Source of the DNA: Ophelia neglecta
Taxonomy: Eukaryota
NCBI GenBank assembly: GCA_965285935.1
Contig: OZ260666.1
Coordinates: 11,036,001 to 11,100,000, forward strand
DNA: 64,000 bases
Direction: 5' to 3'
This document shows positions 12,435-63,773 of the stretch, one piece after another. Every line of letters starts with the position of its first letter. Position 1 is the first letter of the stretch. The notes under the pieces were generated by a model. That model made no database searches. It saw only the letters and a program-made list of their open reading frames with translations, and was not told the origin of the DNA. The position numbers and the translations under genes are program-made.

Positions 12435-12807
12435 CTTGCTTTATGTCTTTGTTCACAGTAGCATATATAGGCTGTGATCGCCAGGACAAGGCAAAATTTG
12501 ACTATCCTGGAAAATAANNNNNNNNNNNNNNNNNNNNNNNNNNNNNNNNNNNNNNNNNNNNNNNNNNNNNNNNNNNNNNNNNNNNNNNNNNNNNNNNNNN
12601 NNNNNNNNNNNNNNNNNNNNNNNNNNNNNNNNNNNNNNNNNNNNNNNNNCGCAGGCTAGCTGGAAAGTTCGATATATATTCAGCAAAGCAAGTATGAACT
12701 CGCCTGATTTAGGCTATTCCTTTGTTCTTCTTCTGTTCCCCTGGTGACAATAGCAGAAGTCGGTATTGGACGGCATGGCCCGCTGTCCATTTCGGTACTT
12801 GGCGAAG
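12435..12807 (-). pseudogene. Two degenerate cytoplasmic-tail exon copies related to gene A (12704-12807; 12435-12506)
   Basis: 12704-12807 has the same ctttgtag| acceptor and aligns with exon 20397-20489 (Tyr replaced by Ser, GC donor). 12435-12506 encodes SQPIYATVNKDIKQ with a gtaaga donor but has a TAG in its second codon if read in phase 1. Confidence 0.5.
12518..12649. other. Assembly gap (N run)
   Basis: Run of N. Confidence 1.
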
Positions 12808-13078
12808 CTACAAAGGAACAATCGATTATCGATATCTGGTGCCGTTTGCATTTACGAAGGTAAAGAAAGGGGGTGGATACCTGGCAGACAAAGCCAAATC
12901 AGTGATCTATATTAGATAATTAGATCTTAAAGTGAGCATTCTGTATTCAATAATGAAATGAACTACAGGCAAAATGCATGACATTGTACAAATACAAGTA
13001 AGTTGAAATGTGTTTTGCATGAAAAAAGTAAATCCATCTAACATGAAATTTAAAGTATATACAAAAGTGTCTGTATGT

Positions 13079-13132
13079 CTGTGTTTGTGTGTGTGTGCGT
13101 GCGTTTGTGTGTAGGTGTGTGTGTGTGTGTGT
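13079..13132 (+). repeat. Imperfect (GT)n microsatellite
   Basis: gtgtttgtgtgtgtgtgcgtgcgtttgtgtgtaggtgtgtgtgtgtgtgt. Confidence 0.9.
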
Positions 13133-14414
13133 TTACGTTTTGCCCTTGGAGAGTAACTTCCGAATTGACTAAAGTTTAACTATGAAAGAAGATGCACTAA
13201 CCATATGTAAGGTTGTCCTCGCTCATATGTTCGTTAAAAGTGGCGTCAATTGGCAACCACTTGTTTGACGGTTTGAACTCGCCGGTCAATTTGGGACATG
13301 ATAGTGCTGAAATATGTACTAAAGTCAGTACAGCATACATAATTGATACATTGATTTCAAAAAGGGTCCTTTTGTATTCTGTTTCCGGGCTGAAGACTGA
13401 TTTTTGCACGCATGTAGCATGTATATCAGTTACTCGTGATTTGATAAAACGTCGTGTTGTAATTCAATACTATGACAGAGACACGTTGTAAACAATCTAA
13501 TGTCGTCTAAATGAACTATGTGGTGCCGATCTGTAAGTGCCATGAATGCTGGTTTTAACAGCAATTCAGTGCAGACAGAGGAGGCAAGGCGGGTGGTTAT
13601 TGAGGTAAGATATTTTTCAATAAGTCAGGACTTGTGTTTTAGGAAATTGCGGTGGTATTCTTCAGGATTGGATTTAAATGGGCATTTTACTTCGGGTATA
13701 GGCAGGTCCAAAACACATAAACTTTGTTCCGCAAATATGAATCTAGTTGATAAATAAAGACAACTTTAAGCGGTTGCCTTGCATTTTTTTTTGCGTTTAT
13801 TTTTACATTCTATGTTAGTGACTTCACTACATTAGGAGTAGTCAACTAAGACACACCATTTGCAATGTGAAATCACTGTTTACGATCAGAAATGCATAAA
13901 TTCCGGGAAAATAGAATAATATGTTGCGAAGCCGACCATGGTTGAAAATGTGTGAATACACGATCAATGAAATCATATATGATGTTCGATCAATGCGTTA
14001 CTGACGCATATTCGACATATGCAACTCCCACTGACACATTTAGTTCTAAACGAGAAATAATCCTGGGACTTACGTGGGTACCAAAGACTGATCATCCCAA
14101 AAATCCAATTTGAATGCCCAGCAGGGCTTGAACAAATAATAGTTGGAAATAACCCGGCAAATCGGTCAGAATTGTTAACGAGTCGTCAGCTGCCGGACCC
14201 AAATCATATTATTTCCATCTATATTTAATTCAATTCAGTGTTAACTGCTATGATCATATATCTTAATCCGATACGTAGGTCTATTGTGGCTGTTCCCAGA
14301 CTGTTATTCAGCCTGTTATATCTCCCTGTATTAATCCGTATTTGAAGCTCTTGACTCAGAACTATCACACATTTCAGAGCTGGAGTTAATTGTATAAATG
14401 GTAATCAAAGGAAC

Positions 14415-15943: not shown

Positions 15944-16002
15944 CTAAAGTTACTGAAAGGTGCAAAACGAACAGGTGACCTCATTACAGAGGTTCACTGT
16001 AC

Positions 16003-19000
16003 ATTTATTCTTCAGTCCAGCGGAAGGTAGATGCGGAGGGTAGTCACATATGTTCGTATACATATTATCTAACCAACGATGTTCTAATAAAATGGGTGGG
16101 AAGAACCTTACGAATTTGGAAATTGTTGAAATTATTTCTTATTTGTAAATGTTTCCTAATGAGAAAATATCCCGATAGTGTTAGAGATATGTTTTTGAGT
16201 TGATATGTGCATATAATAAACTGGATACCTTCGATTTTTAACTAATAATACCATGATACCAAAAACAGTCAATTAAAATACATTCACAGTGCAAAACAAG
16301 AAAAGAAAACTACTTACACTTATCCAGATTGGTAACATTTAGTTCTTCATAGGGGTCGGGGTAAATGGGAAGCTGACGTTTTGGCCTAGGGCCCAATGCG
16401 ACGCATGAAGATACTTGAATGACAAAAGTAGCTGATGCTATATAAACCATTGTAATCACAAAATGATAACAAACATCGACATTTATTGGTATATAAATAC
16501 AACCAATGCGTTCAAGTAAGAAATATTTTGATGAACAAAACCAAAGTAAAATGTGCAAATGAAAACAAAGTCATCTTAAAGCGACGAATTTCAAGAAACC
16601 GAAGAAAGAAGCCTGCATGAAACGTCGGTCGCTCACTTTTCGCTCGGTTCGTGTTTCTGCCCTCGACTTCTTTAGGGTGGGTTGCCATGATGGCATTTGG
16701 AAAATCTGGAACATTTAAAAATTTGATATATCCACTTTGGAGCAAAAGTTGCAAGTGCTTATTCTATGCTAAAGCAACTGATATCGTGCTTTTGGCCAGG
16801 TGTTCCGATTTGTCCTTGATTGATTCTGCTTGCTTTTGTTATTTAAACATTTGAGTTTGAATAACATGATCGGCAACGAGTGATCTCCTCCTTTCGGGGG
16901 CTTAAGGTGGTGTGCTACATAACGTGTTAAATATTACATGGTAATATAACATACTAAAAAGTCTATCGTATGGTACTTTAGGTCCTGTATGGGTGTGACT
17001 CTGCTAGATCATGTCTCCGGGCGAACCCACAAGAGATGGGCGATGGTGTAAGCCGACCCCCCCCCCCCCCCACCTCCTTCGTTGGGCAGACAAGCCCATT
17101 TAATAGCATGTGTCTCACTCTATGCACGTATAGGCCTGACGTCTAGAGGGTACTGGCTATCACTGTTTGACCTCGTTTTAACTGCCCCTTTGTTGTTGGG
17201 ATTTCCCAAAATCAAATATTACAATAAAGTAGATCTATTCGGTTTCTTTTTGCTGAACATTGCTTTTTTCAGCACCATATCTATTGAATTTGTAGCGACC
17301 TATAGGGTCTTTCGTACCTAAAGTTTATATATTTCTGCATATTGGCACATTCTTTATAATGGGCGACCATACTGGGGTCGCCTTCACATCATCTTTGCCG
17401 TCGAAGTGTCAGCGCCAATGAGGCCAAAGCTAAGTGTTTCACGGTTAACAGTTCAGATGGGCTTATAGATTTACTGGGCGATATTAAAATCATTAAATTC
17501 CTGGCTAGTGAAAAGTTCCATCAAATTTATATTTTCTTCCACTTTTCCGTGTAGAAAACTGTCACAAAGGTATCACCGAAATATTATGTCTATCTTGTAA
17601 TGCGCTGATACCTTCGAAATAGAAACTTGCTATCGAAAAACACTTTATTATCGGAGTCATTATAGAACGTGTCCAGTCTAGGCATACCAGACGGAATAAT
17701 TTGATATTTTGATATTTTACTATTATATGGAACTTATTACAATGCCAACATTTTTTATCCACGTACCACAATATGATAAGGGAACACACCTGCATAGTCT
17801 GCAAAACCCATTGCAAAAGATGATGGCCACATGGACATGACCATTCATAATTAACATCGCAATAGGTCTAAATTGTGTTTTCAACTACTAACAATAACAG
17901 CAACAGAGCATATCCCAAAAAAATGATAGTTAATTTTAATCGTAGCATACAATAACTACGCATACAAGACGTTTGAGGTGAAGAATATTTCCGTCTTAAT
18001 TTATTTAACATATACTTGCTCCTATAAAAAGGCCCATTGCTTTGTTAACTTACCATCTTACAGATTGGATAAGAAAAAAAATGATATATACATAAATACA
18101 TCATTGTTAAACACTGGCGCGTTTGTTTTGGGTTCTGACCGCATCATGGAAAACTAGAGACTACTTCTCATTGTAAGTGATATCAATTTTAACTTTCATC
18201 TTTTATTATTAGCATTTCAAGTTTATTTAGTGTTTGGAAGCTGGAGATTGGTGTATTGATGGGTGTGGGGCTGTGGCTGCCGCTTTCTGGTGATTTCGAA
18301 CAGGTTATATAAATGGACTATTCTGGATTAATGATTAATGATTTGGCTATGTGATTTGGATTTGTCTGCTGGGAATCCACACCCGTTTTCTTTTCTTGCG
18401 GTTACATCGATTTATTAAACAAATTTTGCTTCACCAACATGAAACGTTTTCTTCCTAACCTTCATCATTTTTGTGTTTTCTTTATGCATTCAACAATTTG
18501 CAAGACTCTGTCACAGCCTGTTTTACCATGGAATTCCATTAGTAACGCAGCTCAATCACATGTTAGGATTTGTTTTCTCAACTAATCATGTCAAAATGTT
18601 AACAACAATATCGCTAATAAGTTCATTTTATGGCAATTGGTTTAAGTTCAGTCCTAAAAGTATGTCAACCATTTACTGTCAATTTTACTAGCTAGTTCGT
18701 GGCTCGGCAAACAATTTATTTGGAATCAACTACCCCATATTATCATGACAAGGATTTTATTCCAACTTTTAACAGAAAATGCAAGTAAGTATGTTTGTTT
18801 TAAATTTCTGGACTAGACCATGTGAGCTGAATTTGTTTTAGATAGAGGTGGGAATCTGGCATTCATGGTAAAGTATTCAACTGCTCTTTTTATAAGCCCC
18901 TGATCTCAGGCAACCTGTGTACCTTATTTATTATGAAATATGGATTGATGGGTATAAAAAAATACACCTTACCGTCTAATGGACATGGCATAGGCACTAC

Positions 19001-22000
19001 AGTGTCATTTGCAATGTTTTCCGCGGTGCAAACATTGCCGTATTCATCATTTGAGTCACAAACAGTCTCTGGGTGGCCACAACCGTTGCGATGAATTGCT
19101 TTGTCATCTCTGGATATTTCGCTGACTGGTAATTAAATATGAGCAAAGGTAGTTAAGGAGTAGGTAGTGAAAAAATTCATGTCAAAGTTGCATACTGTCA
19201 ATCACTTTTAATTTATCTATAACGTTATTTGTGTATTGAAACAGAGTAAAACACATTGACATGCTTAAGGGACCTCTATAATGTATATTTCAATTAATAA
19301 CGAACAGCGATTTAGTTGATGTCAAGAACTAAATTCAATCTGGCGGACATTGTAGGGATTTAATAATATATCAAGTTATCTTGGTGAGGGATGTTATGCG
19401 AGTAGAAACATAATTTTTGCAGATAAAAGCCCTCACGAGTTACGTATCAAATAGCACAATTAAGTGTACTTATATATCAGAATATACTGCATGCCTACGA
19501 AAAATGGTTAATGTTTAGAATATATGTAAAATATATAAACGTTAATGATCTGCAAGAAAATGATAGTTTATTTAAAAAAAACTTTACAACTTGTCCATGC
19601 GATGAAAAAAGTAACAAAATCGTTACGGTCAATGCAGGCCCGCGTACATGTCTTTTTCATTTTATCCACTGCATAGATCGGTAGTTCTTGGCCAGGTCCG
19701 TTGCTGCCACCTGACGAGGATGAAATTGGTTTGGGTCGTGTAAAGGGATAAAGAGTCATGAGAATCATGTGTTATTCATCATAAGCGTGAGGGATACGGT
19801 ATCAAAACAGATTCGAACCATAAAATCGAATAATTTCCGTACAAACTTATATTGATTATCTATTACTCTTGAAATATTGGCCATCGAAACAACGGTTGTT
19901 TCCTTGATGATATTGTCGATTTACAAAAACGAAATTTTAAATATTTTTTTCGCCAAGTTTCTCCTTACTATTGAAGTTAATTGGACGAATAATAATAAAT
20001 TGAATATTGAAGCTATATGCATGTTCGAATATAGGACAATCTCCTATCTTATGTTTTTCTCCTTGGGGCGAAATAGCTACGGCATGCAGTAATCTGCATT
20101 CTAGATATAATAACTAATTACTATTCGTTTCGTAAACACACAGCCTGTCTGGGAACGGTGAATGATATAAAGCAAGTATTTGACTGAAAAGTTTAAAACT
20201 AATTGCTCGAATTGGAGGTTATAGAACCAGGAACAAAAAGGAAACAAAGGTCGTCATTGTATTTTATGGTCGGGTAACATTTGAATATTTATCTACAAGT
20301 GAAATGCCACACTCTCAAGTTTCGCAATATAATTTGCACACATCGTCCTCGAAATACTTTTCCCATAGCAGGTAGTGTAAAAAAACGGCGACTCACATAT
20401 CTCAGACTTGCCCTTTTTCTTCTTATTTATAGTTGCATATATAGGCAATTCTAGGCGAGGTCGGCTAGCTATGCTGGTAGTTGAAACCGCTACAAAGGTA
20501 AAACATGATGGCAATTTAATCATCAATGAGCTAATCTAGATGTTTCAAATAAGTATCCATTTGAATAACAGTTTTTTAGGCCTGCCTTCGCCAAGCAAGG
20601 TACAGGATATCACTTTATATTATATGTGCTTTGTTGTATTCAAAAGGTTCCCTAACATACAGTATACAATTAGTCTATATTTGGAGAAATGTGAATGACG
20701 TCTTTTGCCAAGTGAGGCATTAAATTATTAATATTGAACCGAAAATATACATTAATCAAAACTATTTTAAAGTATAAATATACAAAACATAAAATTCGAG
20801 CCAAGCACACACGATGGCTTCCGATTCCTGCACGTGGTAATATTTAAATTGTTTACCATTGTTAACACTCAATGACCCTGAAGAACAGGCCTCCTGTCGC
20901 ACGCATGAAATGTCTTCATAATAAGGTTCAGTTATCTTGACAGAAAGAGCTTCGGGAACAGAAACATTGAGATTGTTTCACTTGTTTTTTTCTTGGAATA
21001 TTAAAAACGAATAACAAGAAATTGATGTGGTGCTGTTAAGGCATGTAATGTGAAGGTATTCTAATTGAGCACTCATAAACCCTAATATCAAATACATATA
21101 GTTTAATCGGGGACAAAACATGGCACTTCCGGAAGTCATCTAATAGCAGTGAATATGACAATACTTGCGACGTCCATACTGCCATCCGCTTCTGTGGCTG
21201 ACGGTATATTTTATAGTTATCCAACAGGTTATATGTTCGTTCAGGTTTCGCAAAGACCCACATTACTTACTATCCGATGGAGCCATGTCCATTGCTGGGT
21301 CAAACATTATATTATCCACCATAACCGTGTCGTCACCAGAGGAGAAGTCTTGTAACACAAGTACACGGACGATTGAAATTTCTTTGTTATATTGTATCAC
21401 CTTCGAGAGTTAATATAAAGCAAAACGTTGTACTAATGTTATTTGATTCATAATATCGATAGCTACTATTTTCATAGAATGCACTATTGAAATACCTACC
21501 ATCCGATGACAAGGACTCGTCCATTTCGGGGTCAAACACGACGTTTTCCACCAAGAACGTTTCATTGTCTTCCTCCTCAGCATCAATAATATTATCTTGC
21601 ATGGGAATACTAGATATTGTCTGGATTTTGGTAGTTGCATATTTCTTTCCATCTGAAGTTTTACTTGTAGGTTATTATACTACAAACATATATTATAATA
21701 ACGATAGAAATTAATCATCAAGACAATTGATTTAGGGTGATAATTTGTAAAAAATCTACAGCTAAAGGAATTGCTTGTCTAGCCTCTAAATTGCTGTATT
21801 TTTTTACCCTTGGGATGTAAAGAGATGTGAATGACTTACGGACTACTCGAACCAGAATGCTCATCGAGATTACAGTCAAGGCCAAAAGAACAACTATTGT
21901 AGTCACAAACCCTATTACAAGTTCGATGGAAGTTCCTGTAAATAGTGCATTAGAAAAAAAATTATAAAATAAGGTCAAAACCGTGTAGATAAACTATGAT

Positions 22001-25000
22001 TCAACTTCTCTTTTATACAAGCAAGATAGAGAATTTTCATACAAAAAATTATTTAGGGACAGTCATTGCAATAAAACATTACGGAAGAACGCTGTTAAAA
22101 AATTTGAGTCATTTGTTTTGCCGCATATACACCAATCGGTGCTTGTGTTTTGAAATGTTGACATTTAGAAATTATAATAAAAATATAAAAAAATAAAAAA
22201 GACAGTTAGAATAAGCGAAGCGATATATAAATTCTTCCCAAAACCATATATTGTGTAAAATCAGAACGTTGAAACTGATTTGCAACACACATAGAGTAAA
22301 CACGTGAACGTGGAGAAATCGACGTGCACGACTTGCAATGCACGGTACTCCTCCTCAAAGTAGTGCGCCGACCCCAACATCTATAATGTGTAGAGGCTCG
22401 TAAAGGGATTCATACGCAGCTTCTTTACCATGACGGTTACTCTTCTATGGTAAAATTATAGATGAGGGTATCGTCTAGGCCGAAAGGTTGAATCGCGACA
22501 ATATTAGTGCTATCCAGCCGTGCTCGTCATATTTGCAGGTCGTTTATGAGCTTTATGATTGCGCTGGCAGTCATTTCGGACAAAGTTTTGTTTCGACGAC
22601 TCTTCTTCAAAGTTGCGCAACCTACTCTACGGTAGGACGAGCCATTATATGCTTTCAACACAGCACTCACTTCTGATTTAAATGGGGCCCGAATGTGTGC
22701 AGTTATGATTACGAAATTATGACTAATTTGCTGAATGGAGGAAATGTGCACATGGTCAGGAAATTCTCTTTCGCCTTTGGGTATATATTTTTGTTTAAAA
22801 TCTCATTCTTTAGAAAGTATTTTCGTGGCATCAATCAGCAGTTTTGGAACCGAGAGAGAACATTGACAGTCCAAATAGTTGTTCTTATTTTGATTTAAGT
22901 TTCTTTCAAGTCTGTGTGACAAAAGCAGATGATTACAAATTACATTTGGTCAACATGCTCTCCTTGATAGCAATTTTTCGATATCCCCAACATTCCCCAA
23001 TATTAATCATCAACATCTCAAATGTATTCCATCCTGGGGCTTACTTCCTCTCCTTCCCACGTTGCCCACTGACTCGTTTTGTATGGTGCTCTTTATACGC
23101 TTCGTGGTAAACTGTTTACTGCTTGCCTTGGCAAGTGGTATCAATTGTCCTTTCTTTACTGACGTTAGCTGACGGTTGTGTGATGATTTCGAACTAAAAA
23201 TATTAATAGACTATACCTCATTAAAGATTTTGCTTTGTCTGTGGGGTACGTACTCAGATTTATTTTATGCGGCCTAACTGTGGTGATGACGCCCAGGCGG
23301 ATAAATATATTTGTGTACGTTGAAGTAAGCAATGTCTACTACCGAAGCAAATATATAATGAGGCTAGCTCTCATGCCGAAACTGATATACTGAGGCTGGT
23401 AAAAAAAAAACGCTGGCTCTTATTTCGAGGCTAGTAAACAGAAAAGCTGGCTCTAATGCCGAAGCTAGTAAACAGGGAGACTGGCTCTTATAACGAGGAT
23501 AGCAAACAATGAGACTGGCTCTTATACCGAGGCCAAGAATCAAAGAGGCTGGGTCCTATACCAATGCTAGTAAACATGGAGCCTGGGCCTTAAACCGAGG
23601 CTAGTAAACAAGGATACTGGCTCTTATACCTAGCCTAGTAAACAAGCAGGCTTGCTTAATGTACCGAGATGAGTAAAAAAAAAGGAGGGTGGCTTTGCAT
23701 TCTGCCGCTTATTGTATATGTGCGCGAAAGTAAGCTATCAGTGTGAGCCCAACAAAGCCTGATCTGCTCGACTGCAAGTGTGAGTTGTTTATAACCGCAT
23801 CTTACTTATGATCCACTTACATGCAATTACTGTGCATTGCCGTCCAAAATAAGATATTATTATACCAGCGGTTTAAACATCGCAGCCATAGTATCCAGCT
23901 TAACAGAACCTTAATCATTATAAATGCCATTATGCAAGATATAAATGCATCTGTGTATTATTGAAGTCTTACTCTTAACATTATTTGTAGAAAGATTGTG
24001 TTTATAACTACCTTACCTAGATATTACCTTTTGAAAACGCCTGCATTGTCCCTGACGAGTAGTCCAATGGTGTTGAAACCAAACCTGGGAAATAAGTATG
24101 GATAATCACAAGCGCAAAACTGCTAATAAAATAATTTAAGATCCACCGCTAGTAAATAAGCAGCTATGACCGAACAACTGTGGTCGAATAACCATAATTA
24201 GCGACTACTCCTCTGCAGGCAGGGTTTATATCCGGTGGCATTCCAAGACATTAACAGTGGATGGTCAATGAACCAATATACGAAAACACTCATATACTAG
24301 ATATTTTGTGTTTTCACCAGAGTATCGTAAAAACAATTACAAATTATTTAACACACAGTTAAAAGGATTTTGCTTACCTGACCTCACTTTATTTGTCTAG
24401 TATATGCATGTATATGTATGTGCATGTATATGTAGGTTTAAAAGGCAAATAATTAAATCTACCAAGATCAACTGCTTCACTTGGCTCAGACTCATAATTT
24501 GAACCTTCCTCGCGTCCCCGACAGGAGTAGGTTGATAACGGACCTTCCTCCAAAGATAAGTCGATTGATGATTCAAAACTAGCATTTGTGATATCTGTTC
24601 CATCACGCTGCCAGATGTAGGTCATATTTGGACGATAGATTTCCGGCAGAGAAGTCAAGTTGACTACACAGGTCAAACCATAGTCTTGAACTATAATGGA
24701 GGCTGAAGTTGGCTGACCTGCATTGTAAACAAATAGAAATTATATTAACCCCTTGGTATCTTTTGTCGAGGTTGGAATGCTTAAAGAGACTTAGAAAAGT
24801 ACTTAGTTATTTTATCTGAAATGTGTTCATCTTAGATTTTTTCTTCCATTGATGAAAATAACAATACCTAGGGTTAACTGATACGACATTTTTTTACATT
24901 TTTGACACTTGATATCAGTTTATTATCCTTCAATTCTGATTAGTTCTGACTTGGTCAAACATTTTCACTATGCAATTACGCACGTGGTTGTGTGTATTAT

Positions 25001-26126
25001 ATAAGGTTTTAGCTTACCCCATACAAAGATGATGCCTGAATTATTATAGTTGTTCCCAAAGCAGGAATATGTTCCGGCGTCGTCAAGCGTGACATTCGTC
25101 AAAGTGATATCCGCCACAGAATAATTACTCCAGCCAATTGTGAACCGGTTCAATTTTAGGTATTTTTTTGCCGGAAATATTTCTGTCACCTTTACATTAA
25201 ATACAAGTGTTTGATTATTGTCAAAACAGGTAACATATCGTTTGTTGTCACCACCTGGTAAATACCAGGAAAATGTGGCGTTGTCACCCTCGTAAACCGC
25301 TGTGATTTGAGGACCTGAGAGAGAATATTAATAAACCCGAGTTATATCAAATTGGTTTTAGGTATGTTGATAACAGAACAACCATTTCTAGAGACAAAGT
25401 AAATTGTACTGAAGGCCAGGCATAAACTAAAGGTTACGACCATATTTCGAATGCATGTTATAAATACACGCAGTGCTTAGTATCAGGACTGAATTCTTAG
25501 TTAACTGTTATGGCTATACCAAATAGTTATATTTTCCTCCTACCTCGAGCCTTGCCCCCCTAGCCCTCACCTAGTGACACATTCACATTAATGTGCCTTT
25601 GTTTAATAATTATTTGATTTGAACTTATGTGAAACGTTTGATAGTACTGTTCCGTTTTCTTCTGCCAAATCTGTGTACAAGAGCAGAAAGGCATGGCTCA
25701 CACAAAAATCTATTAAAATTACTTCATAATTCAATGATGTGTTCATAGTTTAAGGTGGACACGAACTCCTCCCTGCCTATGCATTATGATTGCTCCAATA
25801 ACTTGTAATAACGGTAATTGTTTTTAATACATTCGTCTATAGAAACTATAGTACTACTTCATTTTTAGGGCGTCACAAGTTTGTTTATACTAGCCAAGCG
25901 GTTTCGGAACGTGTAGCTGCACATCCATAAGCAACATGTTTGGAAGAACGCAGCCCCCCCCCCCCCAAGAGCTCCGTGTTTTGTGTACTGTGTATTTCAT
26001 TCAACAAAACCAAGTACATTACTTACTGTCTGCAGCCAGTGCCAATAAACAGACAATTTGCAAAACACAAATGACATACAATGTAGAATTTGGCATCAGC
26101 AGATCCATTCCTCTGTAGAACCGCAT
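16003..26126 (-). CDS. Gene A: single-pass Ig-superfamily receptor (signal - atypical V-set - Ig2 - stalk - TM - long Tyr-motif tail). Predicted exons 26027-26126, 25018-25314, 24463-24717, 24028-24084, 21840-21935, 21500-21652, 21271-21348, 20857-20949, 20397-20489, 19648-19710, 18973-19125, 16318-16413, 16003-16068; terminal exon not resolved
   Basis: All listed exons have AG/GT boundaries and phase-1 junctions, and join without stops. Leader MRFYRG...VICVLQIVCLLALAAD; V domain GDNATFSW...YVTC...ITLTNVTLDDAGTYSC; Ig2 LTC...SLP...MTYIW...YSCRGRE; TM LVIGFVTTIVVLLALTVISMSILV. Ecto and TM exons are high confidence; individual tail exons are moderate. Confidence 0.78.
21840..21935 (-). CDS. Gene A exon: transmembrane helix (96 nt)
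   Basis: tttacag| ... |gtaagt; about 24 hydrophobic residues followed by R. Confidence 0.85.
23361..23695 (+). repeat. 34-bp minisatellite, about 9-10 diverged copies (gene A intron)
   Basis: Unit approximately gaggctagtaaacagaaaagctggctcttatacc, repeated in tandem. Confidence 0.85.
24463..24717 (-). CDS. Gene A exon: second Ig-like domain (255 nt)
   Basis: aatgcag|; canonical C..W..YxC; homologous to 63083-63334. Confidence 0.88.
25018..25314 (-). CDS. Gene A exon: atypical V-set Ig domain (297 nt)
   Basis: ctctcag| ... TGG G|gtaagc; DxGxYxC F-strand motif; Trp at the B-strand Cys position. Confidence 0.9.
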
Positions 26127-38546: not shown

Positions 38547-38683
38547 AAATCTATTCTTGGCATAGATAAAGCTTTAGAATGTGTGTGGAGGGATGCCCAC
38601 CTACTAAAACTTTTTAAGCTCCCTATTTGAGGATGTCTGCGGAAACTTATAAATGAATGTCTAATGGAATTCAACATGGGTGT

Positions 38684-47076: not shown

Positions 47077-47634
47077 AATGGGAATCTGAATTCAAAAAGT
47101 TTATATCATAGTCCCCCATAAAACAACAACTTTTCCTTCAGTCTGTATTATGGATAATATAATATAATGGTTCGGCATGCAGAGACGACCTTAACAAATC
47201 TCAACAAATATGTAACTGCTATTAAACAGGACTTGGTTTGAATCACTCATAGGGAATACTACTTTAAGCAGAACATGAAAATAATTTATCACAGTCCGAC
47301 TCATCGCATTCAGGTTTGTGATGGTTTCTTGACACACTTGATGGATAATATTAGTATAAGCAATTATATATATGATATTCCCAAGTTGAAAATTATATTC
47401 GTTTTGGCCGTGGTCCGTGGACGGAAAAGAATCCCCAAATGTTAGCTACTTGTTCTAGCTGGTCTATTCAAATGAAATAGCATTCATATCTATACCATAT
47501 AAATATCTCATATAAATATTATATTCATAACTAAAATGGATTTGTTATCCTCTGATCGACGCTGATACCGCCCCCCCCCCACCACCACCACCCCCTAATC
47601 ATTTTCGAAATTGTGATTTTTTCCCATGTTTTTT

Positions 47635-51300: not shown

Positions 51301-53428
51301 GCTTGGATCTATATGTGAATGATTCTTACTGAAACATAATCATATGTTAACGATACGCCTGTTAAGTTATAATAAACTGAGAGTGCCTGATTGAAATAAC
51401 TGATAATATTTTATGTATAATGCTAATGAAAAACATACATATTTCTCTACATAAACATTGTTTTGAAGTAACATTTACATACTTCATCCAGCTTACAGAT
51501 TATTTTTTGCATATATTCTCAAGCTATTGACATGAGGGCTTTATCTCTAATACTTATTATAAGGCCCAGCACCTCCTAAAGTTCCCTGGATAATAAACAA
51601 ATTGTTTTTTTTTCCTTTATCTCAAGTCATGGAACACCGTGTTTATATTAGGCAAGTGTTATACTGACTGCATCAGGTTGATTTTGGTTTAATCAGCCTC
51701 GAATCCATTCCCGTTTCAACTATATAACTGACATTTTGATTATATCAGTGAAATTTTCCTAATTGTGGGATACCCACACTTTTCATGAATGACTTACCTT
51801 TCTAAAGCAGTGCAGTTCTTTCTGTCCGGCGCGCTGTCGTTCGTTCGATATTTGATCGTCAGCATCCATAAGTACTTTAGAATCATTTGATACTTCATTC
51901 TGAATTAAAAAGATATTGGTGAGAATAGGAAAATGAAAAGACTATGAATATTTCAGTTGCTTGTTTTGCTACTAAAATCAAGACAGTATAAATACTGACT
52001 GACTAATCGCAGAATTAACAACGTACATGTTCTTCTAATACCAAATGCACAGGTCAAACAATTCCCCTTACCATATTGCTTGAAAAATGTCATTAGTAAC
52101 ATAAATATAAGTAATAAGGTTATGACACTCACAGCAAACATGTCAATATCATATGATTACCTTATCATCTGAGTGCTCCCTTTGCCTACGTCGAAAATAC
52201 AGACAGGCAGCAAAAACAAGAACAGACACCGTTGAAAGGACCAAACCGACACTTAGAATGGCAGGCCATACATTGCTAGTTCCTAGCACAATTTGAGTTG
52301 AATATGGAAACAACATTTCTGTTTGGAGCATATCAGTTGTTGGTGTTGTCTGTCTATTCGGCACATAGGTGTCTAATGGATTAAAACATATCGAAATTTT
52401 CAGCTTAACACTATAAATATGCACATTATCGAAGCAGTCTCTTGTCCTCAAGAAATCAGATTTTAACTTGTTTTAAATAGTAAAATTAAAATGACCAACC
52501 TTTGACGTGAACGTAGATTTGTGTTTTACTTGGTTTGTACGCAACAAAATTCAAGATCACATCGACTGTTTCATTTCCGCTTTTACTGAATGTCATGGGT
52601 CCGCCTTCGCAGTGAGAGTCCTTGTGTTGGGTACCACTGCATTTGAACTGTTTCTGGCCACCAGATATGGTACAATAGACAGGGGGATCGGCTGCTGGCA
52701 TCACTACTAGCATTGAAATAGTTCCATGTTTCTCTAGTTCAATGCGCGTTCCATTGATTGAATTCATTAAGGAGGTCTCAACTGTTGCCTTGGTGTATAA
52801 GGCCGGATTCAGGTATTTGGATGAATCAGGGCAGGCTGAAAGAATACACTTACGATTGCCAAATAAAATAAACTCAAACTAATAGGTTTTAGTCAGTAAA
52901 AAGGGAATCGTAGTAAATGACATGTACTAAGCAAAGAACTAACATGAGGCCAGACACAAGGCAGGGAAGCCAGAAGGTTAATGGTGTGTGATAAAGAAAG
53001 ACATCTAGTGTTTTTAGTATAGGTGGCACGTTATGGTGCGGACTCTAAGTTTTGTTCCTTCTAAGGGCACAATAGAAGTATTTTTATTGGCCGCTAGTTA
53101 CCTGATGAGGTCACCACGTGTAAGTCGGCTTCGTCTGCTAGAAGGCGTAACGGATTGCCGTAGTATACATCCAATGTATATGTCCCGTTGTCTGACATCA
53201 TTGCGCGGTTTAAGGTGAATCGGAAAGACTCATTTTCAACAATATCTACTCTATTCATCAACTGTTTAGCCTTTTCTTTTCCGTACTTTTCCATAAGAGG
53301 GACCCAATCTGGATGAGACTTGTAGAAATGCATTGAATTCAGCTCTCCTATACTGTGGTTGTATCTCCACACGAAGCTGGCAGAAGTACCATTACAAACG
53401 TAGACTGTTTCCGGACGTTTAATCCAGC
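47635..53428 (-). CDS. Gene B: V-like Ig domain - beta-sandwich domain - TM - linker - ankyrin repeats. Predicted exons 53102-53428, 52500-52835, 52161-52372, 51798-51899 (and/or 50248-50349), 47635-48384; candidate leader exon 54761-54859
   Basis: Canonical splice sites with compatible phases (1,1,1-to-0,0,0). V-like GTSASFVW...FTLNRAMMSDNGTYTL...ADLHV; TM WPAILSVGLVLSTVSVLVFAACLYF then RRRQR. Joining to the ankyrin exon is inferred. Confidence 0.6.
49168..52305. repeat. Tandem triplication of the gene B TM/linker segment (units 49168-50560, 50561-~52113, partial ~52114-52305)
   Basis: Anchor gttatgacactcacagcaaacatgtcaatatcatatgattaccttatcatctgagtg occurs three times; long near-identical stretches between units; unit 2 has an extra block at about 51085-51255. 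Confidence 0.95.
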
Positions 53429-56400
53429 CTGAAATCAGAATTCTTAGGATTTTCAATTTTGGGGTGTAAGGACACATATGCAACATCTGGGCATTTTAGA
53501 GTAACTAGTTGGGTATATTTCATATTTAAGAATGAGAATTGTGTTAATTTATTTTTTTAATTAAATTAACAAGTAGTAATGGCATCATTATTATGTTGTT
53601 GAGCTTTGTGTAAAACTTTTGGGTGTATGGATAAAGTTTGTTAGGTGAATGGGTAGTTCAATAGCCAGATTGAACATTGGCTCATTTTACAAGCGGATGA
53701 TCTTTAAACAGGGCAGGTTAAGTCCCAGGTTCTCACATGTTTTTTAATAGATTTAAATTAATATTGAATTAATGACTGTTGTTACTATGGAAACACTGTA
53801 GTTGCAGAGCTCAAATTCATGACGTCACGCCCAGGAGCTATAGGTTATTAAGTTGCCCAGGGGTACAAAAACCGGAACATATATAGTATGAACAATTGTT
53901 TGTGCAGAGGTTCCAAATGAGTTGAAGTTTTTGTTTTAATCTTAACGTTTAGCTTAGCTCAACTGTGCGTGGTTTTCTATGGAAAAAGTAGGTTCTTATG
54001 ACATTTTTTATTTAAATAGCGGCCTCCGGTATATTGCTAGTAATTACCGTTTTTTATGGGTTAACCTTTGTGGTTTAATACGGTCTTACACCAAATACCA
54101 TATTATTGCAGACGAAATGTCTTGCTTAAAATGCACCTCAACAACGCGTTGGTAATAATTTCAAATTATATTGACGCCTGTTTGTCGATGAATGATCATA
54201 TCGGCGAAAAGCGACAATTTGGTTTTCGCGAAGAGTCACTATCCCGTCCTACACACAGTAAGCATGCTAACCACGTATATTGGATGGCGTCCATTTTGAT
54301 GATATTTAAAGCAGGCCCGTAATTTTCATATTTATTTGATAAACATGTTAATAGTCAAATTAGTTTTGTGGTGATGCAAAGCTAAAAAAAAAACAATTTA
54401 TCGGTATAGGAAAAGCACATTCAGCTCTGATTTGAAAATTGTACTAATTATATAACACTGATGGTAGACCGATGGACATTACTTTTTTTGTGTGCCTGGT
54501 ATTGATTCCCCATTTGTCCCCATTAAAGCTTATTGGCACTTGACGAAGTCACTGTTAAAGATCACCAACGGACAAAGTAACCAATTGCCTGAAAGCTGCA
54601 TACGTATGAATTGAGAGGTCTGCATTCAACTTTCATACTATATCAAACAAGATGGCTGCTAAAAAAAATACCGCCAGGGAAGCCAATTTCCGAGAGACTA
54701 ATAAAAAATTCCATTTGGTAGTGTTGTCGCAATTTCACAGACTTACAAAGGCATCCTCACCTTCAATAATTTTGCCTTTTACCATACAAACCAAGGTAAT
54801 TTTATAGTAAATACACACGGCGATATATTCACTCTTGAAGTATAAAACCCATGTTCAAGCTGGAACCATTAGATAATCGGCAAGGGATAGGATGGTGAAT
54901 ATTTTTGAAGAAAAAAAACTGTGTCTGTCATATATTTGAAGAACAGCGATATTCCAAACTTTTTGTTTGGATCGAAGATAATGACAAGAATTTTGTGTTT
55001 GTCCTCTTTTGATTGTCTAGATCTTTAATTGTGCTAAATGTATGGACCACTAGTCGGAAATCATATACAGAAATTAAAATTATTGATAACCTCAATCCTT
55101 AATAGTAGAGGACAGATATACCAAATGTATTGTTCACTAATAGCAAATCAAGGAATGCAGTGTTTAGGTTGACTTTGACCTTAGAGCCTCTTGATGGCTA
55201 TAATGTTCTTCTCATGGTTTATGTGATAAGGATAAAGTGTTAGACGTTATGAAAGTTAAGATCACTTAATCTCATCTGAAAGTTTGACCTTTCTTCTTTT
55301 ATATCCATTAATGTATAATCATTTTCACAGCCTGTGTGCACCTAAATTACAACTTTAACATTTTCGTGTCAAATGTCTCCAGCACCGAATAAAGAGTTCC
55401 CATACAACTCACCTCTTTCTTGATATAGTTTTAACCGACTGAACAGGAGCGTCTACCCCCTAAAACCCGGTTACTTTTGCTTGAAAGTTAATATTGCGCC
55501 GCTTGCTGCCCCTCCCAAAGTATCCGTTTGGCGCCGATCGTCGAGTACGCGAAGTTGAGTAGGCTCGTAATTGAGTTATATTTAGTTTTCAGACACAAAA
55601 GTATGTAGCGACAAACTACAAAATAACTAAACAAAGTTTTCATATTAAATCTGAGAAACAAAAAGTGTCCGAGGGTAAACTTTTTATCCACGCCTGACCG
55701 CCATCGCTCACCCGAGCCTAATTGTCGTGGTAACGGGAATGAGTAACAGAGAGTGTGGATTAATAGTAGAACTATAGTAAACCCAGACCTAACACTGCTT
55801 AAGGCCGGCTTCTGCCAAAGCTGGCTGAGCTGACAGTAGACACCGATACCATAACCTCACCACGATGGAAGGAAACCCATTTTAAATATTCTTGATTCTT
55901 TAGAGATAACCTAGTTGTTTAAAAACAACTTTCTTGGGTTTAAGAAGGGTTATATTCAGTCGTTAAAGAAGGGATCATCAAAGTAGCTAACGTACACCTC
56001 TTCTAACTTAGCAATAACATTAAACTTTGTCATTTAACTATTGTAATGAAATTAAATGAGAATCACTGAAGATAATCACAATAAGCCTACCATTCTCTTG
56101 GTCCGTTTCGACTGCTCGGAAATACACAAACCAGCATAACAAAGTGACCTCTGCAACACGGTGCATTACTGATGTGACGAATCCCATGTTTCAATTTCTT
56201 GCCTGAAATGTATAAAATACTGTTAAGAAAGAAAATTAACTAATTATTTTGTATATATGTCACAGTGTGCGCTTTCCCAATATACGTGTATGTATTATAA
56301 TTATCACCTCGGACGTGGTTTGTCGCAATTGTGACTTAAAAGATTTCAAATTTAATTGCGCTATATTGATGCGATATAATAATCAAATCATCTCAAATTA

Positions 56401-60458: not shown

Positions 60459-60635
60459 CAGTGAAACCTGACAATAAGGGACAGCCAAGGGACTGGGAAA
60501 TCTGTCCTCTTTTCTCAGTTGTCCTTATTTCACAGGTTACTTTACATGTAAAGTATTACACCTGTACTAAAAACAATGTCCTTAATAGTCAGTGTGTCCC
60601 TAATTGTCAGGTGTCCTTTAGGCCAGGTTTTACTG
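60459..60635. mobile_element. Tc1/mariner (pogo/Tigger-like) MITE
   Basis: TA|CAGTGAAACCTG ... CAGGTTTTACTG|TA; internal tgtcc subrepeats. Confidence 0.8.
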
Positions 60636-62102
60636 TAGTCGGCACGACATCATGTCGAACCATTAGGCGAAAGCCCAATTCATCAATCCTTAGTTCACTA
60701 ACTAATAATACTTGTAACTAATTAGTCATGAAAAGCAATGACAAAATTCCGGACACTTCCGGAGATCCACTCCTGTTTTGGTAAAACCTATTATTAACTT
60801 GTTACTCTCAGTGAAAGTAAAACCATTCCAATCTCAAGCCATCGATTGGTATCATTTGGCTGCTTGAATTAATATAATTTTACAAAAATAAATACAAAAG
60901 CGTTTTAAAGCCATCTTATGCTCTAGAAGAATATTATTGTTGTGCTTAACACAGGTCAAAACTTTCATTGAATATCTGTTGATTTCCACCAGGATTGATA
61001 GACATATCGAGCGTATGACCTGTCGAATTTTCGTTTTCGGTGCATTTTGTGTTGTTTCCTTTAAATATATTAAAATAATATATTATACATTAAAATTGCA
61101 ATGATAATTCAATGACCTATAACTGCAAATAATATTGATGAATTATCAATGGTAAATTAATATTTATAAAAACACGGTAAATAATGATTGTCTATTATAA
61201 GTAAACTTGATAACAGCGATACGGATATAAGAAGAAGCTAATTTCATGGTGTTTTAGGTGACAACCCATTTTGATGTTTAGTGATCAAGTGAATTTATAT
61301 GAGGAACATTGAGGAACAGTTCTAACTCTGGCACACTGGCACGTATATTCAATGGAGGTTACGACAATAACTAGACAAATTGTGCGCCTCTCATTGTGTG
61401 TTCTTTTACACGGAACTGAAATAGCCGGGCACAGTGAGGAGGAGCTTGTCTGAATAGAAAACTCAAATATGTCAATTGGCCATGGCATCTGCACGCGCTT
61501 CGTGTTTTTGGCCAGGTTGCATTACAAGTTATCTCAGTGACTGCAAACTAGTTAGTTTACTGTCAATTTAAACAGTATGTGTTATTTTCTTAATATCAAG
61601 CCGGTTCCCACGTTCACCACTTCCGAAACAGTAGCATAGTGTCACTTTCTGCAATGGCCGGTTTATGTGCCATTTAATTTGTTGTTGCCCTATTTAAAAT
61701 GTGTCGTACATGGTGCCGTAATAACTGAGTTGGGTTGAATTAATTATCGGCATTTGTCGCCATTCACTTTATTTTTTTCGCATTATGCCATATAGTGACG
61801 ATGAATTACGCCCAACAGTAATACTCTAGGTCCATTAAGAGGCAATCCCTCTCCGCTTTCAATTTTTACGTGAATCAGTTTTGGTAATTTTGCCACCCCC
61901 CTCCACCTTAAAAAAAAGGCCATTTCAGATTGCAGAAGTTCCGTTGTCTTCGGGATTAGTTTTTCGACATAATAAAAGTACCATTAATAGACTATTATCT
62001 TTACTTAGACAACTTTAAGCAAAAACTATCATAAAAGTATCAAAGTAACATATCGTTATGTTCATAACAGAAATAAATATATGTCCAAAAGAATACACTT
62101 AC

Positions 62103-63773
62103 TTTGATAGGCAACGAGGATTGAGCATAGTACGATGACGGACAGAACACACACTAGTGTGGTAGTCACCAGTGTCACTTTAGAAGCATTCCACGCATGA
62201 CCTAGGGGAATATGCATTGGTCCATATCAGTATTAAGAAATTGTACAGTATTTATATAATATTACATATCCGAAATTACCTTACACATGTCTCTACAAAA
62301 TTTCCTGAATGCCTGTGCCAATCAAATTATAGCATAAACTATTTTTGGTGTAAATTCAGTATGTAACATGATACTGAAGATGAAATAAAAGCATTTTAAA
62401 ACAATCATTTACCAACAGTCACATTAAGATATAAAGCAGGTGACTTACCTTTCATAGTATCATCAGTAGTAAATGACGTAGGTGAAACATGTTTCGGGTG
62501 TAATGCGGATGGTTGAAAGTCTGTGACGATGCAAAAAGGCACAAGTGTCAATAGTATTTTAATTAGGTACGTAAGCGAAAATAAATCAATTCAGTTGCCT
62601 TGCCCTTATCGTTTTGTTGCCATTGACACTTAACGAACCTACTTTACATAGATAACTTTTATTTTGCCATTAACAAACTCCCTGAACCATCCTTACTCAC
62701 CATACATCCTCTATCGGCCTATTAGCTCTGCTCCAATACACTTTCTACACTGATTTGTATTTATAAATAGTGATTTTCATACGAGGGAAATACGAAAAGC
62801 TTCAGGTGTGACAGAAATACAGGAAAGGTGCTATTAACAAACGCACTGAAGCTTTCTATCCTAAACGCTTACATGTACCCCAAGCATGATATATATAATG
62901 GCAACCAATAATATATATAAATAATGGCAACTGAAGAAAAGGACACATTTTTATTGGGAGAAGGTAAACATTCAGAGAAACAAGACAAACCCGCCCCAAC
63001 CCATGGCTACTTGAATCAATGTTTCCAAAAGATATTTAGGTATGTAGGTTTACTGGGTGCTACGGGGAAGATCTGTACCCACCGATATAAGCACTGTTTT
63101 CTGACTGCAGATAAGAGCCCAATTCCTGTCCACGACACGCGTACTTGCTGATCTTGTTCCTATGCAGTCTTGGAACATCAAAGGTAGACAAAAAAGACGC
63201 GTTTTCTATTGTTGACCCACTTTCGACCCAAATATAAGTCATTGGGGGTCGATGGTCTGCCGGCAGGGAGGTTGACTTAACATCACATTTTAACTTGTAT
63301 TTTTCTGATTCTATAGTGGCGGTCGATGGTTCTCCTGAAGTAAGAACATTGTTAAACAGAGATGCATAATGAGAATATTTTGCCATTGGTGTTTTATATA
63401 AGATTTGCTTACTTTTATTTTCGATTATAGGCAGAAGTTGTATTTCGTTGTATACCAATGCATCCCGAGGACTTACCCCATACAAAAACAGTGTTTTTTT
63501 CGTGATAGTTCACTGCACGACAGTCGTACGTTCCGGCGTCCTTTAAGGTAACATTTATCAGGGTAATAATGACCAATGACGTATTGCTCCAACTCATTTG
63601 GAGACGGCCATCTAAGGTCTTCTCACCAGTGTGAAACACCTTGTAGTTATTTATGTTGAAGTCATGTTTTCCTCTATTTCCATAGCAGTTGACTTGCTTC
63701 CGTTGTCTTCCTTCTTGGAGATTCCACGTAAGATTGGCGTTACTGCCGGTCGAAACCTTAGTGACGCGATGAC
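62103..63773 (-). CDS. Gene C: paralogue of gene A (atypical V-set - Ig2 - stalk - TM). Exons 63477-63773, 63083-63334, 62449-62520, 62103-62201; leader beyond the window; tail unresolved
   Basis: Phase-1 AG/GT exons of 297, 252, 72 and 99 nt. GSNANLTW...QVNC...ITLINVTLKDAGTYDC; LKC..STSLP..MTYIW..YACRGQE; TM VTLVTTTLVCVLSVIVLCSILVAY. Confidence 0.88.

Follow-up and report, generated by a model that had tools for sequence, protein, structure and literature searches.

Genes and repeats in the window

The 64-kb window (the whole stretch of DNA analysed) carries exons of three genes, here designated A, B, and C, and these exons are far above chance expectation (Table 1). The three co-oriented exon sets claimed by the sequence-only reading are present on the minus strand, each encoding one membrane helix in addition to a V-set domain and a second domain. 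Pfam recognized ig or V-set domains in the V exons of all three genes and gave strong Ank matches for a 251-aa ORF. The exon plan that the genes were said to share holds for the V, second-domain, and transmembrane exons; a leader exon is found for A and is weak for B, and none was found for C, while a separate stalk exon was not confirmed in A, B, or C. The tails differ as described: tyrosine-motif and acidic cassette exons in A, an ankyrin exon in B, and no motif exons in C. Trp at the B-strand Cys position of the V domain is seen in all three genes and is invariant in the aligned A-type (12/12) and B-type (12/12) paralogues. A single receptor type for the three genes was not borne out. A and C are paralogues (38% identity in V, 47% in Ig2) with a canonical C-W-C Ig as second domain, and B represents a different subfamily, whose second domain is an orphan Ig-like domain with four Cys and without a Pfam match. 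B is thus set apart from A and C as no close relative; in profile-profile comparison, only the E-F strand motif aligns.

Table 1. Exons of genes A, B, and C and retroelement features, with positions in the window
Feature	Position	Strand	Evidence
Gene A leader exon, signal peptide	26027..26096	-	ATG, hydrophobic core, phase-1 GTAAGT donor; kept in copy A'
Gene A alternative leader ATGs	26108 and 26126	-	
Gene A V-like exon	25018..25314	-	297 nt, phase 1-1; splice sites; Pfam ig 2.8e-6, V-set 1.4e-4
Gene A second Ig exon	24463..24717	-	255 nt, phase 1-1, canonical C-W-C; splice sites
Gene A transmembrane exon	21840..21935	-	96 nt, phase 1-1; hydrophobic helix then RVVR, GTAAGT donor
Gene A cytoplasmic exon 1, acidic (VFDPEMD...SLSSDG)	21500..21652	-	acceptor at 21652 or 21595
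Gene A cytoplasmic exon 2 (MFDPAMD), internal duplicate of exon 1	21271..21348	-	FDPxMD twice, phase-1 donors
Gene A tyrosine cassette 1 (ELPIYATI)	20397..20489	-	93 nt, phase 1-1
Gene A tyrosine cassette 2 (ELPIYAVD)	19648..19710	-	63 nt, phase 1-1
Gene A tyrosine cassette 3 (QLPIYPDPYEEL)	16318..16413	-	96 nt, phase 1-1
Gene A doubtful fourth tyrosine cassette (QPIYATV)	12435..12471	-	GTAAGA donor at 12435
Gene B candidate leader exon (weak)	54553..54601	-	short hydrophobic ORF, phase-1 GT donor; kept in B', B''
Gene B V-set exon	53102..53428	-	Pfam V-set 3.2e-4, whole domain; paralogue alignment n=12
Gene B second domain D2_B (CPD...IPAADPPVxC)	52500..52835	-	orphan Ig-like sandwich, 4 conserved Cys; alignment n=28
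Gene B stalk and transmembrane exon	52161..52372	-	in phase 1, out phase 0 at DDK/GTAATC
Gene B second copy of transmembrane exon	50601..50810	-	frame and donor intact; ~1.5 kb tandem unit
Gene B third copy of transmembrane exon	49216..49416	-	frameshifted
Gene B terminal ankyrin exon	47635..48384	-	249 codons and stop; phase-0 acceptor TTGCAG/TTACAT; Pfam Ank_2 1.7e-23
Gene C V-like exon	63477..63773	-	297 nt, phase 1-1; Pfam V-set 1e-5, 26.1 bits; splice sites
Gene C second Ig exon	63083..63334	-	252 nt, phase 1-1
Gene C transmembrane exon	62103..62201	-	99 nt, phase 1-1, GTAAGT donor
LINE-type retroelement block between A and B	31091..43167	both	Pfam RVT_1 and Exo_endo_phos
Further RT ORF inside A tail intron	14629-15510	+	Pfam

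The V domain of gene A has Cys at the core-Trp position and retains the F-strand Cys; W16, C29, and C84 are invariant among 12 aligned A-type paralogues. By sequence, A-type V domains match Ig domains of the CEACAM, contactin, NCAM, and titin types, and short-protein searches for A-type homologues gave no matches. Ig2 of gene A shares 61-73% identity with its nearest paralogues (group L003-L008) and 45-49% with the others. Leader exons were found upstream of A-type paralogues, one of them (L010) with a leader resembling that of A and sharing an IVCLL stretch. Paralogue L034 has a transmembrane exon weakly matching that of A and also the SLSSDG exon end of cytoplasmic exon 1. The tail of A comprises in total two FDPxMD acidic exons and four PIY cassette exons, the fourth of them doubtful; its acceptor phase is mismatched to the other cassettes, and it adjoins an assembly gap. 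This gap (12518-12649) adjoins no other exon, and its flanks are collinear with the duplicate copy at identical 132-base spacing; a second gap, at 28102-28269, is outside exons, some 2 kb upstream of the A leader. Cassette 3, if read unspliced, meets a stop two codons on. When the genome was searched with cassette 1, matches of 63-80% identity were found 3-16 kb downstream of at least four other A-type V exons, on the same strand.

The V domain of gene B has no B-F Cys pair, with Trp at B, aligned to the B-strand Cys of PD-1, and Leu at F; a Cys of the A' strand is invariant. Its AlphaFold2 model (pLDDT 87) has a V-set fold, and Foldseek aligned it with MPZL1, VSIG4/CRIg, Nav beta-2, and nectins (TM 0.80-0.85) and with P0 (about 0.75); CD2-type V domains are also among the matches. 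For the second domain, D2_B, the predicted model (pLDDT 89) has generic Ig-like matches only (Foldseek TM about 0.55-0.59, VIA Z about 8). A D2_B profile had 21 matches among 1.84 billion representatives, with no Hydractinia proteins among them. The best 19 are 95-193 aa long, and the eight of these that were looked up are all unannotated ORFs; of the two long matches, one is a JGI "hypothetical protein" and the other comes from Spodoptera.

The local exon duplication that had been noticed concerns the transmembrane exon of B, present three times in a tandem unit of about 1.5 kb. Copy B' has only two; in gene B, the two extra copies make the real transcript uncertain. The donor of this exon is conserved in paralogue L031 (VDK/GT), where the V-D2-TM-ANK order, the TM donor phase, and the ANK acceptor phase are as in gene B. 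The ankyrin-exon ORF of B starts without ATG. By position, at least 10 paralogues of 30-50% identity have the same four exons collinear on one strand; this, together with the tyrosine cassettes downstream of at least four other A-type V exons, supports the gene models. Independent assemblies in public archives also carry related pairs of V_B and D2_B exons: L066 comes from a Logan run, and L065, from an ENA metagenome, has V-D2-TM followed by a tail unlike that of gene B. No described Ig-TM-ankyrin receptor was found.

Gene C has the same W/C/C pattern in its V domain as A; its leader and tail exons were sought in the window and none were identified. The claimed density of transposons agrees with five RT ORFs recognized by Pfam in the window.

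Family size, duplication and divergence

Further paralogues, whose absence nearby had been named as grounds against the sequence-only reading, are abundant: the genome contains V exons of the A-type (at least 150) and of the B-type (at least 135), almost all on contig C9 at 3 to 23 Mb. D2_B exons number at least 150 and are located also on several contigs besides C9. The two receptor families fill about 20 Mb of one chromosome. About 13-18% of the V matches contain stops.

A copy of most of the window, 81-99% identical, is found at a distance of about 150 kb; positions 4557-62366 are collinear with C9:10.885-10.945 Mb. A third copy of B and C is located at 12.89 Mb. Identity between B and B' is mosaic, 97% in the ectodomain part and 88% in the ANK part. 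In reads from one individual, 40 of 40 variant letters equal A'. Read depth is about 12 and about 8.5, or about 21 in shared stretches, compatible with A' as a second haplotype or as a paralogue; copy A' could be a second haplotype placed in tandem.

Divergence is faster in V exons than in the second Ig exon (38-49% vs. 47-73% identity). In recent pairs, V has a dN/dS of 0.7-2.4 and Ig2 one of 0.26-0.46, computed from few changes. Between the window genes and their copies (5-50 changes) it is 0.2-0.6 for V_B and V_C, 1.1 for V_A, and 1.0-1.5 for ANK. As evidence of selection these values are weak.

Alternative explanations and known receptors

The data support an Ig-receptor locus that is clustered and duplicating, whose exons are small and in phase 1 and whose cytoplasmic tails vary. 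With a probability of about 0.6, the window covers a minor part of a very large, lineage-restricted expansion of type I single-pass IgSF receptors in the genome of a marine invertebrate, with two interleaved subfamilies. An adhesion, neuronal-wiring, or gamete-recognition family, neither immune nor allorecognition, is possible but rather unlikely. The cell-adhesion and titin-type matches of A-type V domains fit such a family, and so do the structural proximity of V_B to homophilic adhesion V domains (MPZL1, P0, nectins) and dN/dS below 1 for V_B, V_C, and Ig2. However, hundreds of tandem copies, 13-18% disrupted exons, copy-number differences, and mosaics typify fast-evolving recognition families more, and the orphan D2 domain is missing from annotated proteomes.

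Somewhat less probable is a transposon-rich, decaying expansion of mostly dead or unexpressed copies, in which the apparent duplication would partly be due to uncollapsed haplotypes. LINE insertions inside and between genes, the frameshift in the third TM-exon copy, the stops in V matches, dN/dS near 1 when V_A and the ANK exon are compared with their copies, and read depths compatible with A and A' as haplotypes all point in this direction. On the other hand, all well-defined exons of A, B, and C are open, with intact splice signals and matching phases, and dN/dS of Ig2, V_B, and V_C is 0.2-0.6. An architecture kept across paralogues at 30-50% identity needs long-term constraint, and since there are three copies of B, not all can be haplotypes.

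The genes had been called Alr-like. As in Hydractinia Alr, they belong to a large clustered family of single-pass IgSF proteins with many pseudogenes, their tails vary more than their ectodomains, and an aromatic residue occupies the B-strand Cys position of the N-terminal V-set domain. Alr Ig domains lack the Cys pair, and Alr domain 1 is without both core Cys and has Trp at B (PMC9546547), as is the case in the V domain of gene B. In contrast, A and C keep the F-strand Cys, carry a Cys where the core Trp would be, and possess a normal Cys-Trp-Cys second Ig, which contradicts the Alr definition (PMC9546547). Alr membership fails for A and C, and gene B resembles Alr only superficially. No Fn3-like domain with the invariant Alr cysteines was found in the window genes. 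Alr genes have ITAM/ITIM tails; the tyrosine motifs of the window genes fit neither canonical motif, and an ITIM-like SLYNNI occurs in the tail of one A-type paralogue. Ordinary V-set and CAM proteins were the best V matches, D2_B matched generic Ig-like sandwiches only, V domains without the disulfide occur elsewhere (e.g., CD2), no sequence link to Alr was found, and the host phylum appears to be a different one. It is very improbable that the genes are Hydractinia Alr homologues and the locus an allorecognition complex.

CD2/CD58-type V domains keep the fold without a B-F disulfide, and CD4 domain 2 has a non-canonical disulfide within one sheet. The V domain of gene B resembles the former, and in A and C the placement of Cys suggests a within-sheet disulfide as in the latter (predicted), but the resemblance stops at the generic V-set level, and here Trp(B)/Cys(C)/Cys(F) is invariant across the whole A-type family. 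With the vertebrate multigene Ig-like receptors KIR/LILR, CEACAM, and teleost NITR/NILT the genes share tandem birth-and-death clusters, phase-1 domain exons, a membrane-distal domain that diverges fastest, and the occurrence of both long signalling tails and short ones among members. Unlike those families, the window has no near-identical ectodomain pairs on opposite tails (A and C are 38-47% identical), no charged TM residue for adaptor pairing, and no canonical ITIM, and an ankyrin domain is one of the tail types. Notch and other receptors with cytoplasmic ankyrin repeats are likewise single-pass surface proteins with an intracellular ankyrin-repeat module for protein-protein contacts. The ectodomain of gene B, however, is V-set plus orphan Ig-like and not EGF/LNR. 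Gene B showed no sign of RAM, PEST, or cleavage features, and just one short terminal exon makes up its ankyrin domain.

Proposed receptor types

For A, B, and C, the splicing, the orientation in the membrane, and the signalling are given here as predicted from the exons. An A-type protein would begin with a signal peptide and a V-like domain whose core has changed from Cys(B)-Trp(C)-Cys(F) to Trp(B)-Cys(C)-Cys(F). A canonical C-W-C Ig and a membrane helix would follow, and the tail would be modular, made of symmetric phase-1 cassette exons. This tail would display acidic stretches and Tyr-x-x-hydrophobic motifs, which may dock SH2/PTB proteins once phosphorylated or may serve as AP-2 sorting signals. 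In the B-type protein, a V-set domain without the core disulfide would be followed by the orphan four-Cys Ig-like domain and then a membrane helix. One terminal exon would supply the cytoplasmic part, about 5-6 ankyrin repeats, with partners probably recruited via the ankyrin groove. In both types, the ligand would be bound by the membrane-distal V domain. The family expands through tandem and segmental duplication, the doubling of exons, and mosaic exchange.

That these receptors take part in immune or self/non-self recognition is plausible but speculative. The locus belongs to a real, lineage-specific expansion of IgSF receptors with an Ig-TM-ankyrin architecture that is apparently undescribed.

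Exon models and V-domain core of the three receptor genes

Gene models were built from minus-strand stop-to-stop frames and inspection of splice signals, and all searches were run on single exons. Three co-oriented exon sets, designated genes A, B, and C, lie on the minus strand of the window, as the sequence-only reading had proposed, and ig or V-set matches of Pfam were found in the V exons of all three. For V-set (PF07686), gene C scored 26.1 bits, gene A 22.5, and gene B 21.3 at a cut-off of 26, so only C lies above it. The exon features of A, B, and C, together with the ankyrin matches, are far beyond chance. A leader/V/second domain/transmembrane (TM) plan had been claimed for the three genes. 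V, second-domain, and TM exons are indeed present in each, but a convincing leader was seen in A and none was found for C by our filter in the window plus 10 kb, and the second domain of B is different in kind.

Exons of genes A, B, and C in the window
Gene	Exon	Position	Strand	Remarks
A	Signal peptide	26027-26096	minus	Hydrophobic core and phase-1 GTAAGT donor, convincing
A	V-like	25018-25314	minus	297 nt
A	Second Ig (Ig2)	24463-24717	minus	255 nt
A	Transmembrane	21840-21935	minus	96 nt
A	Acidic, first	21500-21652	minus	'FDPxMD' motif common to both acidic exons
A	Acidic, second	21271-21348	minus	'FDPxMD' motif
A	Cassette	20397-20489	minus	Short, with '(E/Q)LPIY'
A	Cassette	19648-19710	minus	Short, with '(E/Q)LPIY'
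A	Cassette	16318-16413	minus	Short, with '(E/Q)LPIY'
A	Fourth cassette	12435-12471	minus	Doubtful
B	V	53102-53428	minus	
B	Second domain (D2_B)	52500-52835	minus	
B	Stalk/TM	52161-52372	minus	Ends in phase 0
B	Terminal ankyrin	47635-48384	minus	Phase-0 entry
C	V	63477-63773	minus	Matches exon of A
C	Ig2	63083-63334	minus	Matches exon of A
C	TM	62103-62201	minus	Matches exon of A

All well-defined exons of gene A past the leader are symmetric phase 1-1, which is the classic layout of Ig-superfamily receptor genes. Genes A and C (A-type) are paralogues, with 38% identity in V and 47% in Ig2, and Ig2 of both is a canonical Cys...Trp...Cys domain. A profile-profile comparison of gene B (B-type) with A and C aligned the generic E-F motif only. 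By sequence, B is not close kin of A and C, and two families rather than one are present.

A Trp at the B-strand Cys position had been noticed in the V domains and holds in both types. Among A-type V exons, all 12 paralogues compared have W16, C29, and C84, the G-x4-[LF]-x-W spacing equals the canonical G-x4-L-x-C spacing, a Cys stands 13 residues past the Trp at the usual place of the core Trp, and the D-x-G-x-Y-x-C of strand F is intact. From these positions, the Cys-Trp-Cys 'pin' of the domain has become Trp-Cys-Cys, which suggests a putative C-F disulfide, between Cys29 and Cys84, inside one sheet. PDB alignments of the A and C V exons span strands E-F only, so the Trp-for-Cys call in these genes draws on family invariance, Pfam coordinates, and the G-x4-L-x-[W] spacing. 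B-type V exons have an invariant Trp, too, together with an invariant Cys of the A' strand, and lack the F-strand Cys; HMMER aligns this Trp (W20) with the B-strand Cys of PD-1. The AlphaFold2 model of the V domain of B (V_B) has pLDDT 87 and matches MPZL1, VSIG4/CRIg, Nav beta-2, and nectins with TM 0.80-0.85 (E about 1e-8 to 1e-7), and P0 with TM about 0.75. V-set membership is supported by the profile scores and, for V_B only, also by a modelled nine-strand V-type fold.

The second domain of B has no Pfam match. It carries four conserved Cys and an 'IPAADPPVxC' signature; one conserved Cys stands at the start of D2_B, and there is also the conserved one in V_B. Its model (pLDDT 89) matched only generic Ig-like sandwiches, with Foldseek TM about 0.55-0.59 (RhoGDI) and VIA Z about 8 (MAdCAM, ICAM, SYG-2, filamin). 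A D2_B profile found 21 proteins among 1.84 billion representatives. The best 19 are 95-193 aa long, and the eight of them looked up are all unannotated raw-assembly ORFs (five from Logan, three from ENA); the two weakest matches, one from Spodoptera and one a JGI 'hypothetical protein', are long.

The terminal exon of B belongs to the ankyrin repeats by Pfam, with 83.4 bits for Ank_2 (PF12796) at a cut-off of 27.3 and 69.8 bits for Ank (PF00023), and its ORF starts without ATG. The TM exon of B is present three times in a tandem unit of ~1.5 kb (window 49150-52480), which agrees with the local exon duplication noticed earlier. The frame and donor of copy 2 are intact, which makes mutually exclusive use of TM exons conceivable in B; copy 3 is frameshifted.

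Family scale, duplication, and divergence on contig C9

The window belongs to contig C9 (OZ260666.1). The genome has A-type V exons in at least 150 copies, B-type ones in at least 135, and D2_B exons in at least 150, with stops in roughly 13-18% of the matches listed. The V exons are almost entirely on C9 at about 3-23 Mb; D2_B exons occur on several other contigs too. Window positions 4557-62366 are collinear with C9:10.885-10.945 Mb at 81-99% identity, where copies of genes A and B (A' and B') are located; for B and C, there is a third copy at 12.89 Mb. The proposed duplicating Ig-receptor cluster is confirmed by these exon counts and collinear copies.

Whether the copies are paralogues or tandem-placed haplotypes was weighed from reads and copy number. 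For the A region, only two versions were found in the reads of one sample, and all 40 variant letters are those of A'; depths of about 12 and about 8.5, and of about 21 where shared, are compatible with both. The B copies are not all haplotypes, since three exist. B and B' are mosaic in their similarity (window 47000-54000 against C9:10921447-10928392), with 97% nt identity over V-D2-TM and 88% over the ankyrin exon and flank, which suggests gene conversion or unequal exchange among family members. The TM-exon unit is present three times in B versus twice in B'.

V is more diverged than Ig2 throughout, with 38-49% versus 47-73% identity. For A-type pairs of recent origin, omega spans 0.7-2.4 in V (highest with 17 versus 2 changes) and 0.26-0.46 in Ig2, all from small counts. 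Between A and A', none of the eight replacements and two codon indels lies beyond the first half of V, the differences are in its B-C to C'-D part, and omega of V_A is 1.1 (8 non-synonymous and 2 synonymous changes). Also from small counts, omega is 0.2-0.6 for V_B and V_C against their own copies and 1.0-1.5 for the ankyrin exon against its copies. Positive selection on V is not supported, as no omega is significant, neither the 1.1 of V_A nor the values up to 2.4 of A-type pairs; the evolution of V is compatible with relaxed or diversifying change.

Five reverse-transcriptase ORFs in the window agree with the dense transposons reported from the sequence. One is inside the tail intron of A; between A and B lies a block at 31-43 kb. 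Matches of the LINE reverse transcriptase were confined to a limpet and invertebrate metagenomes. On the plus strand, a 409-aa acidic, coiled-coil-looking ORF (window 39045-40274) immediately precedes endonuclease and reverse-transcriptase ORFs; it has no Pfam match and is probably a LINE ORF1 protein. Ankyrin matches inside open frames of 1,600-5,300 aa were seen some 1 kb ahead of the window (C9:11034424-11035011) and at many other C9 sites; these frames would be giant ankyrin genes of one exon each, scattered through the Ig receptor array of this contig. The N run at 28102-28269 is about 2 kb upstream of the leader of A and overlaps no exon. The N run at 12518-12649 adjoins the doubtful fourth cassette only, and its flanks are collinear with the duplicate at the identical spacing of 132 bases, so that it looks like a masked stretch rather than a true assembly break.

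Tails and comparative support for the gene models

The tails had been described as entirely different. This stands for the tyrosine and acidic cassettes of A and the ankyrin exon of B; for gene C, no tail exons were found by motif scan. The tyrosine motifs of A are LPIYATI, LPIYAVD, PIYPDPYEEL, and QPIYATV. When the motifs were compared with Yxx[IL]x6-9Yxx[LI] and [ILVS]xYxx[IVL], no canonical ITIM or ITAM was found in the genes of the window; those of gene A miss the consensus through a Pro or Asp at position -2 and through unsuitable spacings. The ITIM-like motif SLYNNI is present only in a paralogue elsewhere and absent from the window genes.

In a genome search with a cassette that carries the 'PIY' motif, at least four further A-type V exons were seen to have matches of 63-80% identity 3-16 kb downstream. 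The exon end '...SLSSDG' is common to gene A and one paralogue tail, and leader exons upstream of A-type paralogues support type I topology. As linked by position, a B-like ankyrin exon is 3-5.5 kb downstream of B-type V and D2 on the same strand in at least 10 loci, the exons of which are 30-50% identical to those of B. In paralogue L031, all four exons align with B at 53%, 51%, 34%, and 48% identity, and the TM donor ('DK|GT', phase 0) and ankyrin acceptor (phase 0) are conserved. Paralogue L033 (C9:11.72 Mb; 8472-8762) has B-type V and D2, and its TM exon leads into a short tail rich in Ser/Thr/Tyr, with no ankyrin exon within 8 kb, so short-tailed members of the B family exist.

Outside this genome, a Logan contig has V_B and D2_B exons 200 bp apart, and an ENA metagenome contig (L065:6175-10026) encodes V-like, D2-like, and TM ORFs and then two unrelated ORFs of 182 and 290 aa without Pfam match. 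These two may represent a further B-family tail type, from a different organism. One of them has a nucleotidyltransferase-like look ('GS...DID' stretch), which is unsupported by Pfam. From the tails of paralogues and outside assemblies, L033 and L065 included, the idea of one ectodomain type with differing tails holds at the family level. Single-sequence and profile word searches for A-type V in other organisms, among proteins of 55-210 aa only, were blank. Neither Ig-TM-ankyrin receptors nor comparable IgSF expansions in annelids were found in the literature, and the Ig-TM-ankyrin architecture and the orphan D2 domain appear to be undescribed.

A, B, and C would be type I receptors that bind a ligand via the V domain. 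The output of A-type receptors may pass through acidic stretches and Tyr-x-x-hydrophobic motifs (YATI, YATV, YEEL), which would fit SH2/PTB docking or AP-2 sorting, and that of B-type receptors through an ankyrin scaffold of 5-6 repeats.

Relation to known receptor systems and meaning of the array

In the Hydractinia allorecognition receptors (Alr), domain 1 is a V-set domain that lacks the Cys of strands B and F and bears an aromatic residue in place of the former, domains 2/3 are I-set without paired Cys but with the core Trp kept, and a membrane-proximal Fn3-like fold has invariant Cys and a disulfide to the preceding Ig domain; many tails carry ITAM or ITIM (PMC9546547). Genes A and C have W16, but C84 of strand F and C29 are invariant, and, unlike domains 2/3, Ig2 has its canonical cysteines and D2_B of gene B is a four-Cys domain without counterpart in Pfam. 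No Fn3-like domain with invariant cysteines was found, with no such exon seen in A or C, and the ITAM/ITIM tails of Alr also have no canonical equivalent in the window genes. Gene B does agree with Alr domain 1 in W20 and the absent F-strand Cys, and its likeness is limited to this aromatic B position in a V domain free of the disulfide, as is also known from CD2-type domains. There is no Hydractinia protein among the 21 matches of the D2_B profile in 1.84 billion proteins. Kinship with Alr, on which the sequence-only reading was undecided, is not supported, given the V cysteines and second Ig domain of A and C and the lack of canonical motifs; convergence inside the Ig superfamily is the best reading of the resemblance.

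KIR/LILR paired receptors have near-identical ectodomains on an ITIM tail or on a short tail with a charged TM residue. In contrast, A and C share 38-47% identity in their ectodomains, and A, B, and C have no ITIM and no Lys, Arg, or Asp in their TM helices. It is plausible that the locus works like a birth-and-death cluster of recognition receptors.

In the broadest reading, to which we give a chance of roughly one in five, the array of roughly 20 Mb on C9 would be an undescribed lophotrochozoan recognition system. Two orphan IgSF subfamilies with re-engineered V cores would together supply several hundred type I receptors, whose ectodomains exon shuffling would have joined to different outputs (ankyrin scaffolds, tyrosine/acidic cassettes, other domains). 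Such a system would serve immune or allogeneic discrimination and would be an independently arisen counterpart, in function, of KIR/LILR or Alr. Vertebrates, cnidarians (Alr), and a few other invertebrates are known to have large, fast-duplicating clusters of Ig receptors; to our knowledge, such clusters are hardly described in annelid-like animals. The array stands out by its scale of hundreds of V exons on one chromosome arm, by a V-domain core rebuilt family-wide twice, and by a surface-Ig-to-ankyrin architecture with an Ig-like domain whose convincing matches are all unannotated ORFs. With exons as small as these, much receptor biology escapes gene annotation. Known here from genome anatomy alone, the genes would, if expressed, represent a new system for the diversification of recognition receptors and their coupling to signalling outside vertebrates.
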